Part shown: one piece after another, positions 27,172 to 51,038 of the stretch
Layout of the letters: every line of letters starts with the position of its first letter
How positions within the stretch are numbered: position 1 is the first letter of the stretch
Source: Adineta vaga
Lineage: Eukaryota > Animalia > Rotifera
Direction of reading: 5' to 3'
DNA: 64,000 nt
NCBI GenBank assembly: GCA_021613535.1
Contig: CP075493.1
Location: 4,030,001 to 4,094,000, forward strand
Notes under the pieces: generated by a model
Databases searched by the model: none
The model's input: only the letters and a program-made list of their open reading frames with translations
Told to the model about the DNA's origin: nothing
Translations under genes and position numbers: made by a program

Positions 27172-30100
27172 ATGCATCGTCTTCAATACATTATCACTGG
27201 TTTGTACATTCACCAAAAACCTTTATTTTCATCTTTTCTATCTCTTACAGTTCTTTTTCACCTATGCATATTTTGTCGATCTCAAACAATCAACTTTCAG
27301 TGCGACTTTGATACCAATCTGCTTGGAGACTGTCTGTTCGCAAAAACAACCGGTGGTCCTACAATGCTTGCAGATCCAGGCGCCTTTCCCTCCAGTTCAA
27401 ATCCAAAACAACCTATTTCAGATGTCAAAGCGACTCGTCAGTAGACCTCTCTTCACCATAGCAAACAATAAGTCTCTTCGATTATCGATTTTTTAGGATC
27501 GCTGACTATGCCCGACAACGAACCTTGCCAGCTTCCATATCTATATACACCTGGTAATTGGGATATGTACTTCTGTCGTCGTTTCCTTAACAATACATTT
27601 ACTTGTCCAACTCAATCTGGTACTGGTAGATGTGATGCAGGTGAGTTAAACTCATCACATTCATCATCTAACTCAAATATCGACTATCATCGATCTCTTG
27701 TCAATAGGGAAATATGGTCTAATACGAATACCAACTTCTGGTAAAGTTGATCACACATACACAGCTACTGTTCTACAAAGCTCAAGCACTGCTCAATGTT
27801 TTGATTTCTATTACTATGTCACTGACACATCAGAAAATGCTAAGATAGAAATGGCATGGGAAACAGATGAGAACTTAGATGAAATTGTCGTGGTACAAGC
27901 AGTTCCATCACAGAACAAGTGGCAACACAGTAGAACAACTTTCACACTTCCACCATCAACATCTTCATATAAAGTAAGAACAATGCTTATTGTTTCATGT
28001 TATGCATTACTGTTATTTCTTACTTCTGATGTTCTTCTAGATCAGTTTGAGAATCATGCGTGATACAGGAATGACAAATTTCTTTTTTGCCTTCGATGAG
28101 ATCAAGATTTCTGATGGAGCTTGCGGTAACGTTGATTGCATATAATGAATACATTGTTGTAGCTTTGTGATTGTTTTCTGGAACAGGCGACACGATCACG
28201 ACAACAACAACCACCACCACAGAGGAAACAACTACGACGACAACAACCACCACCACCACTGAGGAAACAACCACGACGACAACGACCATACCTGTCGAAC
28301 CAGACACAACAACAACGACAACAACAACCACCACCACCACAGAGGAAACAACTACGACGACAACGACCATACCTATCGAACCAGACACAACAACAACGAC
28401 AACAACAACCACCACCACAGAGGAAACAACTACGACGACAACAACAACCACCACCACTGAGGAAACAACCACGACGACAACGACCATACCTGTCGAACCA
28501 GACACAACAACAACGACAACAACAACCACCACCACCACAGAGGAAACAACTACGACGACAACGACCATACCTATCGAACCAGACACAACAACAACGACAA
28601 CAACAACCACCACCACAGAGGAAACAACTACGACGACAACAACCACTACCACCACCACCACAGAGGAAACAACTACGACGACAACGACCATACCTATCGA
28701 ACCAGACACAACAACCACTACCACCACCACCACAGAGGAAACAACTACGACGACAACGACCATACCTATCGAACCAGACACAACAACAACGACAACAACA
28801 ACCACCACCACAGAGGAAACAACTACGACGACAACAACCACTACCACCACCACCACAGAGGAAACAACCACGACGACAACGACCGTACCTGTAGACCCAG
28901 ACACAACAACTACGACGACAACGACCATACCTGTCGAACCAGACACAACAACAACGACGACAACAACCACCACCACAGAGGAAACAACTACGACGACAAC
29001 GACCATACCTGTAGACCCCGACACAACAACAACAACAACAACGACAACAACGACCATACCTGTCGAACCAGACACAACAACAACAACTACAACGACCATA
29101 CCTGTAGACCCCGACACAACAACAACAACAACAACGACAACAACGACCATACCTGTCGAACCAGACACAACAACAACAACTACAACAACCACCACAGAGG
29201 AAACAACAACGACAACCACAACAACAACAACAATCGAACCGCTTAGTCGACTTTTTTTCTGTGATTTTACCACAACTCTATGTTTTCAGAATACTGATAT
29301 CATCCTTACCAATGGTACTGAACTACCTCTCCTAGACATCTCAGAACCTCCACGAGCACCTCTTTCCGATGCCACTTCTGTCAGTAAGTATTCATCTTCT
29401 TCTCTTTCACTCTCGACACTAACATACACTAACATACACTAACATACACTAACATCTCTTACAGATCGACCAACAATCAACAATTACAAATGTAATCTAC
29501 CCTATCAACTCTCCATCGAAAACAGTACCAACACAACTGATTGGAATATGTGGTTTTGTTACAACAATCAATGTCCAACAGATATAGATCCATCATCTGA
29601 TTGTATGTCGGGTAACTATGGCTTAATGTTTCTTGATCCATCCGAATCAAACAAAAATATCAGTACTTCAATCAGTTCAAGTGGAATGATGCGGAGTTTG
29701 AGTGGAGAACATTGTGTTCGATATTATTATTATTTGACTGTCTATGATGGTATGGATTGGGGTCAACAAATATCAGTATGGGTGAAATCTGACGAAATGG
29801 CCAATGATGAAATGGAGATCGATCGAATCAGTGTTGATGAAATGACAGAAAATCGATGGTATGAACGAAACAAAACATTTACTTCACCATCAACAAACTA
29901 TACGGTGAGATCATTCGAATATTAGTAAAAACAATATATAATGAGTATTTGTTTGTATAGTTGATATATTCATTTGAAGTGATCAACAGTAGTAGTAATA
30001 ATAGTGAGTCAATACGAACAAAGACAATTTATTTTGCATTGGATGACATCGAGTTGTATAATCGAAAGTGTGATGGTGAGTATAGTCGAATGAAGGAAAA

Positions 30101-33043: not shown

Positions 33044-35892
33044 ATGCATTGTCTTCAATACATTATCACTGGTTTGTACATTCACCAAAAACCTTTATTT
33101 TCATCTTTTCTATCTCTTACAGTTCTTTTTCACCTATGCATATTTTGTCGATCTCAAACAATCAACTTTCAGTGCGACTTTGATACCAATCTAAATGGAG
33201 ACTGTCTGTTCACAAAAACAACAGGTGGTCCTACAATAACTGCAGATCCAGGCAACTTTCCCTCCAGTACAGATCCAAAACAACCTATTTCAGATGTCAA
33301 AGCGACTCGTCAGTACACCTCTCTTCACCATAGCAAACAATGAGTCTCTTCGATTATCGATTTTTTAGGATCGCTGACTATGCCCGACAACGAACCTTGC
33401 CAGCTTCCATATCTATATACACCTGGTAATTGGGATATGTACTTCTGTCGTCGTTTCCCTAACAATACATACACTTGTCCAACTCAATCTGGTAGTGGTA
33501 GATGTGATGCAGGTGAGTTAAGCTCATCACATTCATCATCTAACTCAAATATCGACTATCATCGATCTCTTGTCAATAGGGAAATATGGTCTAATACGAA
33601 TACCAACTTCTGGTAAAGTTGATCACACATACACAGCTACTGTTCTACAAAGCTCAAGCACTGCTCAATGTTTTGATTTCTATTACTATGTCACTGACAC
33701 ATCAGAAAATGCTAAGATAGAAATGGCATGGGAAACAGATGAGAACTTAGATGAAATTGTCGTGGTACAAGCAGTTCCATCACAGAACAAGTGGCAACAC
33801 AGTAGAACAACTTTCACACTTCCACCATCAACATCTTCATATAAAGTAAGAACAATGCTTCTTGTTTCATGTTATGTATTCTTGTTATTTCGTACTTCTG
33901 ATGTTCTTTTAGATCAGTTTGAGAATCATGCGTGATACAGGAATGACAAATTTCTTTTTTGCGTTTGATGAAATCAAGATTTCTGATGGAGCTTGCGGTA
34001 ACGTTGATTGCATATAATGAATAGATTGTTGTAGCTTTGTGATTGTTTTCTGAAACAGGTGACACGATCACGACAACAACAACCACCACCACAGAGGAAA
34101 CAACTACGATGACAACAACCACCACCACCACCACTGAGGAAACAACCACGACGACAACGACCATACCTGTAGATCCAGACACAACAACAACGACAACAAC
34201 CACCACCACAGAGGAAACAACCACGACGACAACGACCATACCTGTAGATCCAGACACAACAACGACAGTAACAACCCCCACCACAGAGGAAACAACTACG
34301 ACGACAATGACCATACCTGTAGACCCAGACACAACAACAACGACAACAACCACTACCACAGAGGAAACAACTACGACGACAACCGCCACGACAGAGAAAA
34401 TAACTACGACTCTACCGATAGAACCCGATACGACGGCAACGACCATACCTGTCGAACCAGACACAACCACACAGGAAACAACTACAACCCAACCGGTAGA
34501 ACCTGTCACAACGTCAACACCAAAACAAACTACTAATTCCTTTGTACCAGAAACAACAACAACTGCTCCACCTACAACGACTACAACCACAACAACAACA
34601 ACAACAATCCAACCGCTTAGTCGACTATTTTTCTGTGATTTTACCACAACTCTATGTTTTCAGAATACTGATATCATCCTTACCAATGGTACTGAACTAC
34701 CTCTCCTAGACGTTTCTGAACCTCCACGAGCACCTCTTTCCGATGCCACTTCTGTCAGTAAGTATTCATCTTCTTCTCTTTCACTCTCGACACTAACATA
34801 CACTAACATACACTAACATACACTAACATCTCTTACAGATCGACCAACAATCAACAATTACAAATGTAATCTACCCTATCAGCTCTCCATCGAAAACAGT
34901 ACCAACACAACTGATTGGAATATGTGGTTTTGTTACAACAATCAATGTCCAACAGATATAGATCCATCATCTGATTGTATGTCGGGTAACTATGGCTTAA
35001 TGTTTCTTGATCCATCCGAATCAAACAAAAATATCAGTACTTCAATCAGTTCAAGTGGAATGATGCGCAGTTTGAATGGAGAACATTGTGTTCGATATTA
35101 TTATTATTTGACTGTCTATGATGGTATGGATTGGGGTCAACAAATATCGGTATGGGTGAAATCTGACGAAATGGCCAATGATGAAATGGAGATCGATCGA
35201 ATCAGTGTTGATGAAATGACAGAAAATCGATGGTATGAACGAAACAAAACATTTACTTCACCATCAACAAACTATACGGTGAGATCATTCGAATTTTAGT
35301 AAAAACAATATATAATGAGTATTTGTTTGTATAGTTGATATATTCATTTGAAGTGATCAACAGTAGTAGTAATAATAGTGAGTCAATACGAACAAAGACA
35401 ATTTATTTTGCATTGGATGACATCGAGTTGTATAATCGAAAGTGTGATGGTGAGTATAGTCGAATGAAGGAAAAAAGCTATGATCTATTGATGAAATGTT
35501 TTAGACGCATTGGAATCAACTACAACGACGACCACCAGTTCAGTAACTACTTCAACTACTACAAAAATTATAACATCCACATCCTCTACGTCAAACACAA
35601 CAGAAACCGATCCTGGCTCATCATGTAAGTTATGAAATGTATTGTAGATTAGTATTCAGAGCTTGATATAATTTGTTTAGCAAAACCTACAAATTTAGCT
35701 CTGATTCTGTCTCTTGCTATTGGTATTCCAGTTTTACTTGCTGTTATCGGTGCTGTAGCGTACTATTGCATCAAAATTAGACCTAAACCTAAAGTATTGG
35801 TTAGAAGTGACACTCAACCTACAGACATTCCATTGGTACAAACGAAGAGTTCGACGGATAACAATACAACGGTATCAGCTTTAGTAGCTTAA
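33044..35892 (+). CDS. MAM-like/mucin type I membrane protein (copy B)
   Basis: Near-identical to copy A from the ATG to ~35560 apart from a shorter stalk; different TM/tail exon ending ...NTTVSALVA*. Confidence 0.75.
34060..34610 (+). repeat. coding mucin tandem repeat, shorter and more degenerate than in copy A
   Basis: Same modules as 28190-29235, degenerating towards the 3' end. Confidence 0.9.
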
Positions 35893-45112: not shown

Positions 45113-46156
45113 TTATTGAGATTGAATTGGAAATATTTGATTATTAACTACTAGTTGTGTTTTTCGGCATTGATTACGATATAAAAGAAATAGAACATAC
45201 AAAAATTGTCGACGAAATCGTTCAGATACACATACATAGATATAAAATGATATCTACAAAAAAAACCAACAAAGGCATAACAAATCTTAAGAAAATAGAT
45301 TATTTGAATCAATCATTCTTACTGCAAAGTATGTATAGAAAAGAATAGTTGCTATTGTGTATACAAATTGTATTCGTTGTAAAACAATTGCATCTATCAC
45401 TCTATTATTTGTTGCAGTCGAAACTGCAGTTAATGTAACAAATGGTATATTAGTAATGATATTGATTAGAACTTGTGTAAAAACCATTGTTGTCAATTGT
45501 TTCTCTGTTTCACGACGAACAAGTGGCATTGTTCGATAAGCTATTTGTTGAATATTTCGATAAGCTAAGATTCCAAATAAAACTGTTATAGTATCAGGTA
45601 AATAACCTGTGATACATAAAACAATAAAATAATATCTATAATTCGCGATATTATGATCAGGAGCAACACATGTAACTTTGCCTGTTATTGATGATATGAT
45701 CTGTTCTGTTGTGATAACATATAAAATCATATGTAGACTCCAAATAATTGTAAATAATACCATTAAATAGTGAGCTATTTTAATATTACTCCATTTTTGC
45801 CAACGTTGACGAGTTGACGTAGCAAAATATTGATCAATCATTGCTAAACATAGACATGTGTACGACATAAGAGAACAGAATACAAAAAGTGTCGATCGAA
45901 ATTTACAAAGTGTTACTGACATTGTACCCCAATCCATATCAAAACCAACCATCATAATACGGAAAAAAAGACCGAAGAGTAATTGACCAATATTTACAAA
46001 TGACATTATTGTTAAATAGAATGCACATGAACTTTCTCGAAATGTTCGAAGACTACAAAATACGATAATATTCAATATTTGACCGATAATACCCATGATG
46101 AGAGTAGGAAAACCTCCATAAATTGTTAGTTTTTGTCCAAGATATATTAGTGACAT
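45113..46156 (-). CDS. class A (rhodopsin-like) GPCR, 2 exons
   Basis: Seven TM, LCKFR, IDQY; intron in TM7 (~45254-45322), last exon ISFYIYVCVSERFRRQ...IQSQ*. Confidence 0.88.
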
Positions 46157-46756
46157 AACTAATAACTACAATGGATGTTTATTTAATACGTTAATATTTC
46201 AAATTCATAACATGTAACTCAATTTTGAAAAACATGAAAGATAAGAACATCGTTCATTTTGATAATTAAAACATTGTAATCATCTACCTTATATATTTAT
46301 AAGCAGATATTGAAGGATATCTGATCTCATTTCTGTATCAAATGTCTTTGTCAGATTAAGAATATCGTATGATCTGAAAGTTTCCTGTTATATCAGGATT
46401 AAGGCAATTTATCATAGTTCTTTTTTTTCCAAAGATAAACTATGATGCACTCATTAGTTTCTCTCTCTCTCGAAGAAGAAGAAGAATAATTAATAAACTT
46501 CAAACAAATTTATCCGATAGTTTCAACTAAATATATCATAGTAGAAAAGAATTTTTCTCGTTCTTCGAACGATGTTTGTATTGATGAAGAATAGTTTTTC
46601 GTTCTTTCTTTCATCACTACTGTTTCTCGATTGTAGAGGAGCATTCGTTGTTAAGAAAACAAAATACACTTGATTATCTTCATATACATGCGTGATTAGA
46701 AAAAATGAATTTTATTGTGATGAATACAAAATTTTCAGTGATTAAAAAGATCAAAA

Positions 46757-46945
46757 TTAGTTCTGAGGTCGGTCTGTCATACTAGCTGTAACAAGACTAT
46801 CGGAAGGTGCTGTTTCATTTTGAGATGATGTAACACCACCAGCGGCTGGTGGACGAGATGATGATTGTTCAATCGCTGCTTCAACTAGTTCACTTGTTTT
46901 AGCAGGTTGACTAATTTTATGTTGTTCCATAGCTGATGAAGACAT
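46757..46945 (-). CDS. small Ser/Ala/Thr-rich hydrophilic protein (62 aa)
   Basis: GC-richer coding-like island, CAAAC-ATG context, TATAAAAA at 47035-47028 and AATAAA at 46716-46711. Confidence 0.55.
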   Translation of the reverse strand: MSSSAMEQHKISQPAKTSELVEAAIEQSSSRPPAAGGVTSSQNETAPSDSLVTASMTDRPQN

Positions 46946-47470: not shown

Positions 47471-49741
47471 ATGATGTTTTATTCAATTTCATATTTGATT
47501 CTTACTGTCGTAGTAAGTACTAATGCCTTCAGTAATGACACAGTCGATTTATTCGATCGATCCGAAGGTGATAGTAAATCTACAAATATATCTACGATCG
47601 ATCGTTCAGGTGTTTTTGAACAATTGACGAATTATACATTAGGTGTTCTTGATAATTTTCTACCTGGAGGAACGGGTGTAAAAGAAAATATTGGCAATGT
47701 TGTTTTTAATGTTCATCATTTTACACAATTTCTTTTTGATGGACATTATATTTATGTTTATAGTCCAAAAAAGAATGAAGAAAATATTCATGAACCTCGA
47801 AAGTGGACATTCTTCTATGTACCTATCCTACAACCAGTTCAATCATCGTTACTTTCACCTTGGGTATCACTTAATAAACTCGAAGTACGTATTCGATTAG
47901 CTTTGGGCACATCGAAAGTTCAAGAAGCTGCTCGTCAAGCTATTATCAATCAATTTGATGATGAAACAGTACAAAAATATTCTCGATCATGGGTTATTGC
48001 TCCTTTAATGCTTGATTCTCTTTCTGCTTATATTGTTACTGCTGGTTCAATTCCAGTTCCAGGTGTCACACCATTTCGTATTGACAATCCAAATTCGGAT
48101 ACGATTATATTACGTTTTGCCAGTTTAACCAAAGAAGTTTCATTAGTCATTGCTGCTGGTTTACTAATTGGAGATTTTGATATAGAAGTTTCACTTTATT
48201 TCTCTGGTATGCATCGAGTTCGAACCAATATGATGACAATTACAGCGACTCAAATTCAATCCGTTCTAAGTAAAACAATTGCAGATGGTGGTGTAACAAA
48301 TGTGACATATATTCATCGAGAACAAGCAACAAATTTTATTGCAAAATATCTAACAAATGTTAAAAAATTGATCTATATCGAAGATTTCAATGCTAATACA
48401 TCACTAATGACTTATGGTTTACAAGAACAACTTGGCTCGATCTTTCAAGAAAGTATGAGCAATGCGAAAGAGATACATATTAAAGCGAATGCTTTTAATC
48501 AAGTATGGCAATCGATTGATCTTCATCCAGATCGTATAACAAGTGAAATGAATAAGATGTTTACATTTAATCAAACAGAAACAGATAAACGAAATAATAA
48601 AGAAAATTATTATTCAATCAATCAATTAAAAGATTGTCCTTTACCAAGTCATACGACATTACAGACACGTCTTCAAACACTTTTTATTTCTTGTAATAGA
48701 AATCCAGATAATAATCAACAAAATACGAAAAATCAAGAATATGAAAATGCTACTCATGATGTTGTTTCGGAAACAGATATTAAGAATGCTGCATCACAAG
48801 TATCGATTGAAGGCAGTTGGCAAGGTACAAAATTCATTCCAAAATCATTCAAAGTATTTCGATTAATCGATGTAGTAGATCGATTACAAGTTGCGATTAT
48901 TTCCAAACAACTTCTAGCTGAAAAAGCCAATGGAGCTGTTATTCGAAGAATTAGTGCTTCAGCATCATTATCAAATGCATTGAATATCTTTGCTTCGTTA
49001 GACAATGCAACTTTATTTGCATCATTAGAAAATACTACTCTTTTAACATTGTTAAACAATACAAATTTAACACCAATAATTAATATCGATAATCCAAATT
49101 TATCTGTACCTACATCGAGTTTTCTTACTGGTGAAATCAAATTATATGCTGGTTCATCTTCTCCTGAATCTCCATGGTTATTATGCGATGGTTCTATTGT
49201 TTCTCGAACTGAATATTCACGATTATTTTCAGTTATTGGTACAAAATATGGTCAAGGAAATAATTCACAAACATTTCGTTTACCTGATTTACGTGGTCGA
49301 ATACCGATGGGCGTTGATTCTGAACAAATACGTCTTATAAACGCGACAGATATTGGCAGAGAAGGTGGACAAACTAGTCATACATTAACTATTGATCAAT
49401 TACCAACGCATAGACATGATTCAGGCACATTTGAAACATCATCGGATGGACATCATACTCATCATATTCATGATCCTGGTCATAATCATGGTGGTTTTAC
49501 TAATACATACGCTGTTTCATCATCATCAAGAAATAGTTATGGAGAACATAATTCTCAAACTAATGGTTATCGACAATGGCAATCCTTTATTATACCACCA
49601 GCAGTAACAAAAATATCTTTACAGTCGAATGGTAATCATACTCATAAATTAACAGGTCATTCAGGTATAATCGGACAGAATCAATCATTTTCCATTCTAC
49701 CTCCATTTCAAACATTCTATTATATTATCTATGCTAACTGA
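47471..49741 (+). CDS. secreted protein with C-terminal phage tail-collar domain and HxH tail-fibre tip, intronless
   Basis: Signal peptide; from ~49121 TGEIKLYAG...WLLCDGSIVSRTEYSRLFSVIGTKYG.G....TFRLPDLRGRIPMG (tail collar), then GG..SHTLTIDQLPTHRH, HHTHH, HNH, HTH and ILPPFQTFYYIIY end. Confidence 0.88.
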   Translation: MMFYSISYLILTVVVSTNAFSNDTVDLFDRSEGDSKSTNISTIDRSGVFEQLTNYTLGVLDNFLPGGTGVKENIGNVVFNVHHFTQFLFDGHYIYVYSPKKNEENIHEPRKWTFFYVPILQPVQSSLLSPWVSLNKLEVRIRLALGTSKVQEAARQAIINQFDDETVQKYSRSWVIAPLMLDSLSAYIVTAGSIPVPGVTPFRIDNPNSDTIILRFASLTKEVSLVIAAGLLIGDFDIEVSLYFSGMHRVRTNMMTITATQIQSVLSKTIADGGVTNVTYIHREQATNFIAKYLTNVKKLIYIEDFNANTSLMTYGLQEQLGSIFQESMSNAKEIHIKANAFNQVWQSIDLHPDRITSEMNKMFTFNQTETDKRNNKENYYSINQLKDCPLPSHTTLQTRLQTLFISCNRNPDNNQQNTKNQEYENATHDVVSETDIKNAASQVSIEGSWQGTKFIPKSFKVFRLIDVVDRLQVAIISKQLLAEKANGAVIRRISASASLSNALNIFASLDNATLFASLENTTLLTLLNNTNLTPIINIDNPNLSVPTSSFLTGEIKLYAGSSSPESPWLLCDGSIVSRTEYSRLFSVIGTKYGQGNNSQTFRLPDLRGRIPMGVDSEQIRLINATDIGREGGQTSHTLTIDQLPTHRHDSGTFETSSDGHHTHHIHDPGHNHGGFTNTYAVSSSSRNSYGEHNSQTNGYRQWQSFIIPPAVTKISLQSNGNHTHKLTGHSGIIGQNQSFSILPPFQTFYYIIYAN

Positions 49742-49824: not shown

Positions 49825-51038
49825 CTAATTACTAAAACCCCAAAATGCACTAGGTAGATTTTTTACATCTCTTGCACGTTTAACAATCGATGTAAATGAA
49901 GATACACAATTACCAATAAAATAATCAGCATGTGCTAACATCGCTACATCAATAACAGGTAACCATGGATCTAAATGTTTCACATATACACGTTGAGCCG
50001 AAAGATGTTCTTCGATTTCTTTAATCATTGGTCGTCGATCTGTTGCAACATAAATATGATGTATTCGTGTACGAATGACAACATTTTTTAATAAACGAAG
50101 AATATCATCATCAGATGGATAACATAATTTTCGAGTAACGAAAAGATCTGATAAAGCTGAAAGATCTAAACATTGAGGTGCAGCCATATATGAACGAGAT
50201 CGATACGATTCAACGTTAGCACAAGCTCTTTCCCAATCCAGATCATTTCGAAGATGAATTCCTAAAACAAAAAGAAAATCGACGAAATCAATTAAACGAA
50301 GAATTTTATTCTATTTACCTATATAAGATTGATTATTGAATAGATTTTGTTGATGTTGTCGAACTTCATTCATAATAGTGTCAGACCAAGTCATATATTT
50401 TTGTAAATAACGATATTTAGCTTCCATCGGAAATGAAGCAGGTGCTCCTTTTAGAGCTATGACTGGATATTGATCAGGTGGAAATGTTTGCTTCCATTGA
50501 TTAATTGAATAATCATCATAATTAAGATTATATCCAACTGTATCAATAAAATCAACATTTAATTCATCCCAAAATGGTCCAAATGGATTGCCTTCTTTCA
50601 TTTTACAATCTGATTTAGGTTTATCCGGTGTTAACCAACAGAAACCAATACGTGATTCAACTGGCCAAATAATTGGTGCAAGTCCATGCAGGAAATCTTG
50701 AGCATCAATAACACGATGATATGAACGAAGAGATTCGAGTTGAAACCATTCAGAATATGGAATATTCTTATAAGTTCGCCACTGTATTATTTATAAAAAG
50801 ACAAGAATTTAGTATTTTTCTAAAATTATATACTCACAGGTGGAACAATCAATGTTCGATTAAGTAATTTTGCAAATGCTAAGCCGCCAAGAAAATGTTC
50901 CGCTTGATTACCGAATCGGCCCATGCATAAACAAAAAATAATATAACCATTTGGATCAATTTCATTCTGTTCTTTTACTGTTCTAACTCCAAGAATAGAT
51001 AACGACAATATTACAAAACTATATATAAAGAAATTCAT
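49825..51038 (-). CDS. POFUT1: GDP-fucose protein O-fucosyltransferase 1, 3 exons
   Basis: [60 protein letters not shown]. Confidence 0.95.

Follow-up and report, generated by a model that had tools for sequence, protein, structure and literature searches.

In a stretch of 64,000 nucleotides of genomic DNA from Adineta vaga, a bdelloid rotifer (contig CP075493.1, positions 4,030,001 to 4,094,000; referred to here as the window), we analyzed a gene at window positions 47471..49741 of the forward strand. It encodes a protein of 756 amino acids (aa) in which a signal peptide and a conserved but undescribed domain, termed here the N-domain, are followed by a linker and by a phage-type tail Collar with a His-rich fibre tip. 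The same order of N-domain, linker and Collar was found in bacterial proteins, and we consider it highly probable that the gene has a bacterial origin and came to the bdelloids with this architecture. Positions below are those of the window, and the parts of the protein all lie on the forward strand.

The open reading frame (ORF) starts with ATG, is free of internal stops and forms a complete coding sequence, with orthologues of 54 to 77% identity in Adineta, in Rotaria and on metagenomic bdelloid contigs, and with intact ORFs in ~20 bdelloid sequences of the family. The corresponding NCBI entry, hypothetical protein I4U23_001257 of A. vaga (P0001, 780 aa), shares 99% identity with the ORF over 747 residues and differs at the start only, where 33 aa from an upstream exon (46722-46945) stand in place of the first ~14 aa of the ORF. 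These 33 aa are at odds with the N-termini of the orthologues. Since orthologues (P0006, P0018 and that of Adineta ricciae, the last by use of an unannotated in-frame upstream ATG) carry a similar hydrophobic leader, we prefer the ORF's own ATG as the better gene model, with a coding region that is best taken to lack introns. The upstream exon may be an annotation error or part of a separate small gene; on its opposite strand we observed a small ORF (~60 aa) whose ATG lies near 46945 and whose stop lies near 46760. Read by eye, the N-terminus of the protein, MMFYSISYLILTVVVSTNA, is a signal peptide, predicted to span aa 1-19 (47471..47527), and equivalent hydrophobic N-termini were seen in P0006, P0018, P0029 and the paralogues that carry a Laminin_G_3 domain (LamG).

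The phage tail Collar occupies aa 554-612 (49130..49306), where the Pfam model PF07484 was matched over its full length (positions 1-57) with an E value of 3.2e-21 and 75.5 bits against a cut-off of 24; a genome-wide search for the Collar family recovered the same place. It is followed by the His-rich fibre tip at aa 613-756 (49307..49738), with a weak Pfam match to Gp10_C at aa 609-698 and a C-terminal P-P-F-Q-T-x-x-Y-I-I-Y motif. H-x-H sites lie at aa 647, 662, 665, 671 and 723, and four HxH pairs (647/649, 662/664, 671/673 and 723/725, or 98/100, 113/115, 122/124 and 174/176 when numbered within the C-terminal piece) varied hardly or not at all among 17 family members from both rotifer subfamilies. 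In the trimeric fibre tips of phage T4 gp12 and gp37, such HxH pairs hold metal. When a profile of the C-termini of 17 family members was compared with solved structures, it matched the long tail fibre of Anabaena myophage A-1(L) (gp34, 8KEC) over both collar and tip, with an E value of 2.8e-16 and 22-203 of its 209 positions aligned, and T4 gp12 over the collar with an E value of ~2e-5. The Collar of the 756-aa protein itself aligned with that of gp12, and the HxH segments of its tip with those of 8KEC. The fibres of 8KEC are described as trimers (PMC10966104). The original prediction, made from the sequence alone, had described an intact intronless ORF with a signal peptide and a C-terminus that resembles a phage fibre, with a tail-collar and repeated HxH motifs; all of these elements held, the signal peptide as a prediction, and trimeric phage fibres were indeed the best solved relatives of the C-terminus.

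This resemblance ends with the C-terminus. Matches to tail and tail-fibre families of PHROG were confined to the C-terminal third of the protein, which also carried the longer PHROG alignments. The A-1(L) fibre and T4 gp12 (1OCY, 1PDI and 5IV5) likewise have a Collar followed by H-x-H segments, but they are parts of virions, attach to the baseplate by their N-termini and are encoded in tail modules, whereas the rotifer protein has a signal peptide and an unrelated N-domain of 400 aa and is encoded in an animal chromosome. No phage genes were found near the rotifer gene, the neighbours being animal genes. We therefore rejected the identification as a virion tail fibre on the grounds of these neighbours, of aa 1-545 being devoid of PHROG matches and of the location of the bacterial homologues outside tail modules. 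The name "microcystin-dependent protein", which the Joint Genome Institute (JGI) gives to metagenomic copies of the rotifer family, comes from automatic Collar annotation and is silent on the other 550 residues; the Pfam Collar domain is what the family has in common with MdpB-like and stand-alone bacterial Collar proteins, and the likeness to MdpB is one of Collar annotation.

Between the N-domain and the Collar lies an Asn/Leu/Thr-rich linker or stalk at aa 479-553 (48905..49129), built of imperfect repeats of ~9 residues and short or missing in one of the two rotifer subfamilies (subfamily B). Six N-x-S/T sequons fall within it, among them those at aa 512, 521, 529, 532 and 543; the whole protein has 16 such sequons and three cysteines only.

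The N-domain (aa 76-478; 47696..48904) was delimited by profile search, hhalign and an AlphaFold2 model. A profile of the N-terminal region of 14 bdelloid sequences, searched against 1.84 billion representative proteins, gave 168 matches. The strong ones were bdelloid proteins, and the weak full-length ones were of three sorts, namely proteins combining the N-domain with Laminin_G_3, bacterial proteins, and an Adineta steineri gene model joining AIG1 to the N-domain. We then used a joint alignment of 41 rotifer and bacterial N-domain sequences, to which the rotifer protein matched with an E value of 6.7e-137 over profile positions 1-374 and with the W-x-F-x-Y-x-P, H-R-D and D-L-x-P-D motifs present. 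The motifs that bacteria and rotifers have in common read W-x-F-x-Y-x-P, Y-[IV]-H-R-D-[DQ], D-L-x-P-D-x-I-T...N-K-x-F-T and W/E-G-x-K-x-x-x-K-S (or W-x-G-x-K-x-x-x-K-S); the H-R-D and Asp motifs were nearly invariant from bacteria through rotifers. By hhalign, the N-domain was related to the bacterial proteins P0262 and P0251 with probabilities of 97% and 97.8%, respectively.

The first 545 residues alone had no match in PHROG or NCBIfam, the whole protein had none in NCBIfam either, and Pfam, applied to all 41 N-domain sequences with E values up to 1, returned no consistent family. Comparison of the N-domain profile with PDB sequences gave nothing meaningful, and PADLOC found nothing in the rotifer and bacterial members save weak LeoA matches in the GTPase parts of cyanobacterial proteins. 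With rotifer sequences only, AlphaFold2 produced a poor model (mean predicted local distance difference test [pLDDT] score of 54.6), for which a fold search returned generic beta-sandwich structures at Z scores up to 8.1. With the 41-sequence alignment the mean pLDDT rose to 81 (predicted template modelling score of 0.49), and the model was divided into a beta-sandwich that has helices inserted in it (model residues 1-175) and a second, mixed alpha/beta part (180-403). This better model had no Foldseek match in the PDB at an E value of 1e-3 or below; an exhaustive VIA search gave a best Z score of 6.1, which is background level, and against the Atlas template modelling scores were at most 0.33, with the Atlas feature search, at 0.82, in the range of noise. 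Likeness to a dynamin stalk, seen at Z scores of 5.3-5.7 and thus also at background level, was set aside as a lead only, despite the GTPase fusions described below, and pore-former-like and toxin-like readings of the paralogues were unsupported in these searches. The sole significant structural match was an uncharacterised 417-aa protein of Medusavirus stheno T3 (BFVD A0A7S7YF07), with an E value of 1.8e-10, a probability of 1.00 and 12% identity over 422 alignment columns spanning the full length of the protein. A giant-virus member, placed here by predicted fold alone, would be unexpected in a domain family that is otherwise bacterial and rotiferan.

The N-domain is thus real and conserved, as its bacterial homologues and the model show, yet undescribed, having no solved-fold or Pfam match. 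The ~500 residues that had initially been set aside as unassignable did lack any Pfam, PHROG or solved-fold match, but aa ~76-478 proved to be a domain with bacterial homologues. Modelling them, as had been suggested, likewise succeeded in part, yielding a usable model but no solved fold and the one viral protein.

Among the bacterial relatives, P0262 (642 aa) bears a signal peptide as well as a Pfam Collar, the latter at aa 453-514, and aligned collinearly with the rotifer protein over 680 columns, from rotifer aa 83 to 727 (BLASTP 1e-16). Its gene lies on a bacterial contig of 5.4 Mb, between genes for Lon, NrdR, an extracytoplasmic function (ECF) sigma factor (sigma-70) and peptidases. P0272, P0245 and P0252 also combine N-domain and Collar, and P0251 and others have an N-domain followed by a diverged collar-like C-terminus. 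The order of N-domain, linker, Collar and C-terminal hydrophobic motif was observed in bacterial proteins of at least three lineages in the family. Such proteins (P0262, P0272, P0252) resemble the rotifer protein in part order, signal peptide, N-domain motifs, Pfam Collar and C-terminal hydrophobic motif and are collinear with it from end to end, but they are only ~17-22% identical, their tips are poorer in HxH, their linkers are shorter and they are encoded by single genes in variable contexts. When a single genome was scanned for each prokaryotic species, the N-domain was present in a metagenome-assembled genome (MAG) of Acidobacteriota, a Planctomycetaceae MAG, and in Nostoc, Anabaena and Phormidium. 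The bacterial homologues reside in ordinary chromosomal or island contexts, outside phage tail modules, and some share variable islands with genes for ResIII, HicB and restriction-modification. At three of the homologues the small genes lying upstream were unrelated to one another, and no conserved immunity-like neighbour was found.

In the cyanobacteria the N-domain has a different partner. The proteins of Nostoc, Anabaena and Phormidium (loci L018-L023) carry the same N-domain, matching the joint profile with an E value of about 1e-128, but they have no signal peptide, and a dynamin-like GTPase (MMR_HSR1) takes the place of the Collar at their C-terminus. The gene is followed by that for a second GTPase with DUF697, and this uncharacterised two-gene cassette, with a cytoplasmic N-domain, was located at L018:7989-10994 in Nostoc sp. 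C117 and at L021:8028-10998 in Anabaena minutissima. It is rare, since only 2 of 201 sampled cyanobacterial genomes had a cyanobacterial N-domain.

Within A. vaga we found eight N-domain loci, two of them with LamG instead of Collar, and nine Collar loci, five with the N-domain and four elsewhere. The seven N-domain loci other than the gene in the window map to C5:16646k, C3:170k, C1:12998k, C1:16591k, C4:807k, C2:4004k (LamG) and C3:14314k (LamG). Among the A. vaga Collar loci, the gene at 47471-49741 is the only copy of subfamily A and the only one free of introns. The subfamily-B paralogue P0029, 40% identical to it, mapped exon by exon in three pieces when the database protein was aligned by tblastn, corresponding to two introns. 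Another subfamily-B paralogue, at C1:16591487-16592254, has an in-frame TAG in its first N-domain piece and may be a pseudogene or contain a missed intron. The two LamG paralogues (L013:2107-4029 at C2:4003.6k and L014:2136-4118 at C3:14314k) are intronless and have signal peptides, and their Laminin_G_3 domain is of the ConA-like lectin type; a search for N-domain paralogues with other C-termini, as proposed at the outset, was thereby answered. Several N-domain proteins with Laminin_G_3 and signal peptides occur in Didymodactylos carnosus as well, where one relative (P0190) adds FG-GAP repeats and another protein (P0041) shares just the last ~48 aa of the N-domain. The Collar-only loci of A. 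vaga carry other N-termini. In A. steineri, a 706-aa protein (P0134) has an AIG1/GIMAP-type GTPase at aa 9-225 and the N-domain at aa 265-697, without Collar; it echoes the cyanobacterial fusion of N-domain and GTPase, and may represent two genes merged by annotation.

From this anatomy we infer how the protein may work. The signal peptide, the 16 sequons and the three cysteines suggest a secreted and N-glycosylated protein. Its Collar and HxH segment would trimerise into a metal-stabilised tip of the phage-fibre kind, which might bind a glycan or some other ligand on a surface, with microbes as the most plausible bearers, while the Asn/Leu/Thr-rich linker would serve as a stalk and three copies of the N-domain would be presented at the end opposite the tip. 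Since the N-domain stays constant while the head varies between Collar and LamG, it is possibly the part that is delivered or anchored, and the H-R-D and Asp motifs, which are near-invariant, would be in keeping with an active or binding site. As to the specific role, a putative binder of microbial surfaces is a tentative proposal, to which we would give less than even chances; the guess that asks for least is putative microbe binding that serves defence, feeding or adhesion.

A rival role, that of a secreted, bacteriocin-like antimicrobial effector whose tip targets the bacterial surface and whose N-domain kills by acting on the membrane or as an enzyme, appears unlikely to us, although several features of the family would suit it. 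The constant N-domain with its interchangeable binding domains (Collar and LamG), the near invariance of the His-Arg-Asp and Asp motifs between bacteria and rotifers, the residence of bacterial homologues in islands with ResIII, HicB and restriction-modification genes, the weak match of the cyanobacterial GTPase fusion to LeoA of a defence system, and the expansion of the family in the rotifer all point in this direction. However, the N-domain matched no toxin, pore-former or enzyme family in Pfam, PADLOC, PDB sequences or fold libraries, and bacteria showed no conserved neighbour of the immunity type. A broader version, in which bdelloids would possess a modular secreted system of recognition or attack, with the constant N-domain as a new envelope or membrane effector aimed by either a Collar/HxH or a LamG head, is in our view a speculative idea. 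The module so used would be the one that bacterial island genes and cyanobacterial dynamin-like GTPases and, by predicted fold, the Medusavirus protein also have.

Turning to the history of the gene, the named eukaryotic members of the family were bdelloids only (Adineta, Rotaria and Didymodactylos), and the other placed members were bacterial or phage. By sequence, the N-domain was found outside bdelloids in bacteria only, the Medusavirus protein being matched by predicted fold alone. In the N-domain tree, 22 rotifer-type and 19 bacterial sequences were split with 100/100 support, and the LamG sequences formed one clade within the rotifer side. In the C-terminal tree, all rotifer-type collars formed one clade among bacterial and phage collars, with a support of 100 in the Shimodaira-Hasegawa-like approximate likelihood ratio test (SH-aLRT). 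This clade comprised 45 sequences labelled rotifer and 23 unnamed ones from the N-domain search. Three sequences in the trees (P0037, P0133 and P0135) are labelled rotifer without a species name; a contig check covered P0037, whose contig is eukaryotic, with a LINE-like (long interspersed nuclear element) reverse transcriptase and a fragmented ATP-binding cassette (ABC) transporter. The collar phylogeny that had been called for thus gave a single rotifer clade but resolved no sister group or donor lineage.

The simplest history compatible with these sequences would be one transfer of a complete bacterial gene, with both domains, at a time before the bdelloids radiated; duplication and exchange of domains would have come later. 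Because bacterial proteins show the same order of N-domain, linker and Collar, the two-domain architecture most probably predates the transfer. A single ancient acquisition would have brought in signal peptide, N-domain, linker and Collar/HxH tip together; afterwards the gene would have taken on host composition and a fixed place beside the host gene POFUT1 (described below), with purifying selection acting on both halves, and in the course of duplication within bdelloids LamG would have replaced the Collar in some copies, with the Collar joined to other N-termini in others. The foreign, phage or bacterial, origin put forward in the original prediction was upheld, and bdelloids were the only animals among the named members of the family. 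By contrast, its view that a phage fibre had been joined to an unknown effector within the animal was not supported, given that the N-terminal ~400 aa have bacterial homologues in which the parts follow the same order.

A fusion made in the rotifer after transfer, of a phage or bacterial Collar/HxH tip with an N-domain of separate origin, nevertheless deserves attention as an alternative, given the shuffling seen in the family (LamG, the AIG1 model, the Collar-only loci and P0041) and a rotifer tip that is closer in score to phage fibres than to the collars of bacterial N-domain proteins. We judge it quite improbable in view of the occurrence of this order of parts in bacterial proteins from at least three of the family's lineages, the monophyly of both halves in rotifers and an N-domain that, by sequence, is only bacterial outside bdelloids.

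Several observations nonetheless count against a bacterial gene transferred whole and turned into a trimeric surface binder. Among the proteins sampled, bacterial N-domains are only ~17-21% identical to that of the rotifer. When compared with the C-terminal profile of the rotifer family, collars from bacterial N-domain proteins scored 41-49 bits and some phage fibres 73-121 bits, the best-scoring non-rotifer protein (P0038/P0274) being a genuine phage fibre with three collar repeats from a siphovirus-type tail module. With bacterial collars scoring below some phage fibres, later replacement of the tip by another collar may have occurred. The trees are unrooted, so that the direction of transfer rests on distribution, not on topology. 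Finally, as the cyanobacterial form has a GTPase fused to it and no signal peptide, the N-domain is not intrinsically extracellular, which weakens a simple reading as the scaffold of a surface binder. Taken as a whole, acquisition of the gene together with a trimeric, binding mode of action remains the explanation that we favor and hold to be probable.

The gene is firmly part of the host chromosome. It lies on a chromosome-scale contig of 18 Mb (C1; the assembly comprises 100.8 Mb in six contigs), between intron-bearing animal genes. A gap of 83 bp separates its stop codon at 49741 from POFUT1, a convergent gene whose last exon (49825..50187, reverse strand; Pfam O-FucT, E value of 2.5e-14) ties it to host DNA. 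In two assemblies of A. ricciae, O-FucT is again the convergent neighbour of the orthologue, at a distance of 37 bp, and on a metagenomic bdelloid contig of 564 kb (L029) O-FucT lies 63 bp from the gene, with a CFAP58-like gene coming next as it does in the window; the microsynteny of the gene with POFUT1 is thus kept in three genomes. The GC content of the gene is 0.324, and 0.146 at third codon positions (GC3), compared with a GC content of 0.31 for the window and a GC3 of 0.107 for the POFUT1 exon. Relative to A. ricciae, the ratio of nonsynonymous to synonymous substitution rates (dN/dS, by the Nei-Gojobori method) was 0.145 for the whole gene at a synonymous divergence of about 0.94; by part, it was 0.11 in the N-domain, 0.18 in the C-terminus (aa 553-756) and 0.32 in the linker, which is the least constrained. 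We thus conclude that both halves of this host-integrated gene are under purifying selection. The proximity to a convergent, intron-containing POFUT1 and the host-like AT-rich codons, from which integration had been predicted, were both substantiated. Contamination, or a decaying and functionless relic of a recent transfer, which a Collar typical of phages and bacteria and the JGI name might evoke, is refuted by the chromosome-scale contig with its intron-bearing animal neighbours, the POFUT1 synteny shared across species, the host-like GC3, the low dN/dS, the introns in the paralogues and the intact ORFs in ~20 bdelloid sequences.

A few other features of the window were observed. Its DNA is AT-rich, with a GC content of about 0.26-0.34 outside two segments of threonine-repeat coding sequence. 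These segments hold long forward-strand ORFs (28171-29442 and 34043-34816) of Thr-rich tandem repeats, with poly-Thr, Glu-Glu and Ile-Pro-Val-Glu-Pro-Asp units, which account for jumps in GC content and AT skew; each is followed by the same Cys-containing tail, and their appearance is that of mucin-like stalk exons from a pair of paralogous genes. Upstream of the Collar gene, on the reverse strand (45287-46156), a 289-aa ORF with several hydrophobic segments has a receptor-like appearance, and Pfam gave no match for it at an E value of 0.01 or below.

Horizontal gain of bacterial genes by bdelloid rotifers is a known and common phenomenon, so that a foreign gene in a bdelloid is in itself unsurprising; what is noteworthy is that a phage-type receptor-binding tip has been kept and multiplied. 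Like other horizontally acquired genes of bdelloids, this one has non-metazoan homologues and a host-like composition, has gained introns in its paralogues and is kept across bdelloid genera. Unlike them, it pairs a phage-type receptor-binding tip with an undescribed domain, and the family was later expanded and shuffled. Our literature search, which included combinations of bdelloid or rotifer with tail collar and the locus-tag prefix, found no discussion of the family. The N-domain defines an unnamed domain family that is found in rotifers and several phyla of bacteria and, judged by structure, in a giant virus, with three partners (Collar, LamG and GTPase), and it offers a well-defined target for work on structure and function. 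The case also indicates that what seems to be a chimaera made in an animal can be a bacterial gene taken over whole, which matters when fusion innovations after transfer are counted. For the rotifer, the protein is a candidate for the recognition of microbial surfaces in an animal that has no adaptive immunity and lives among bacteria and cyanobacteria.

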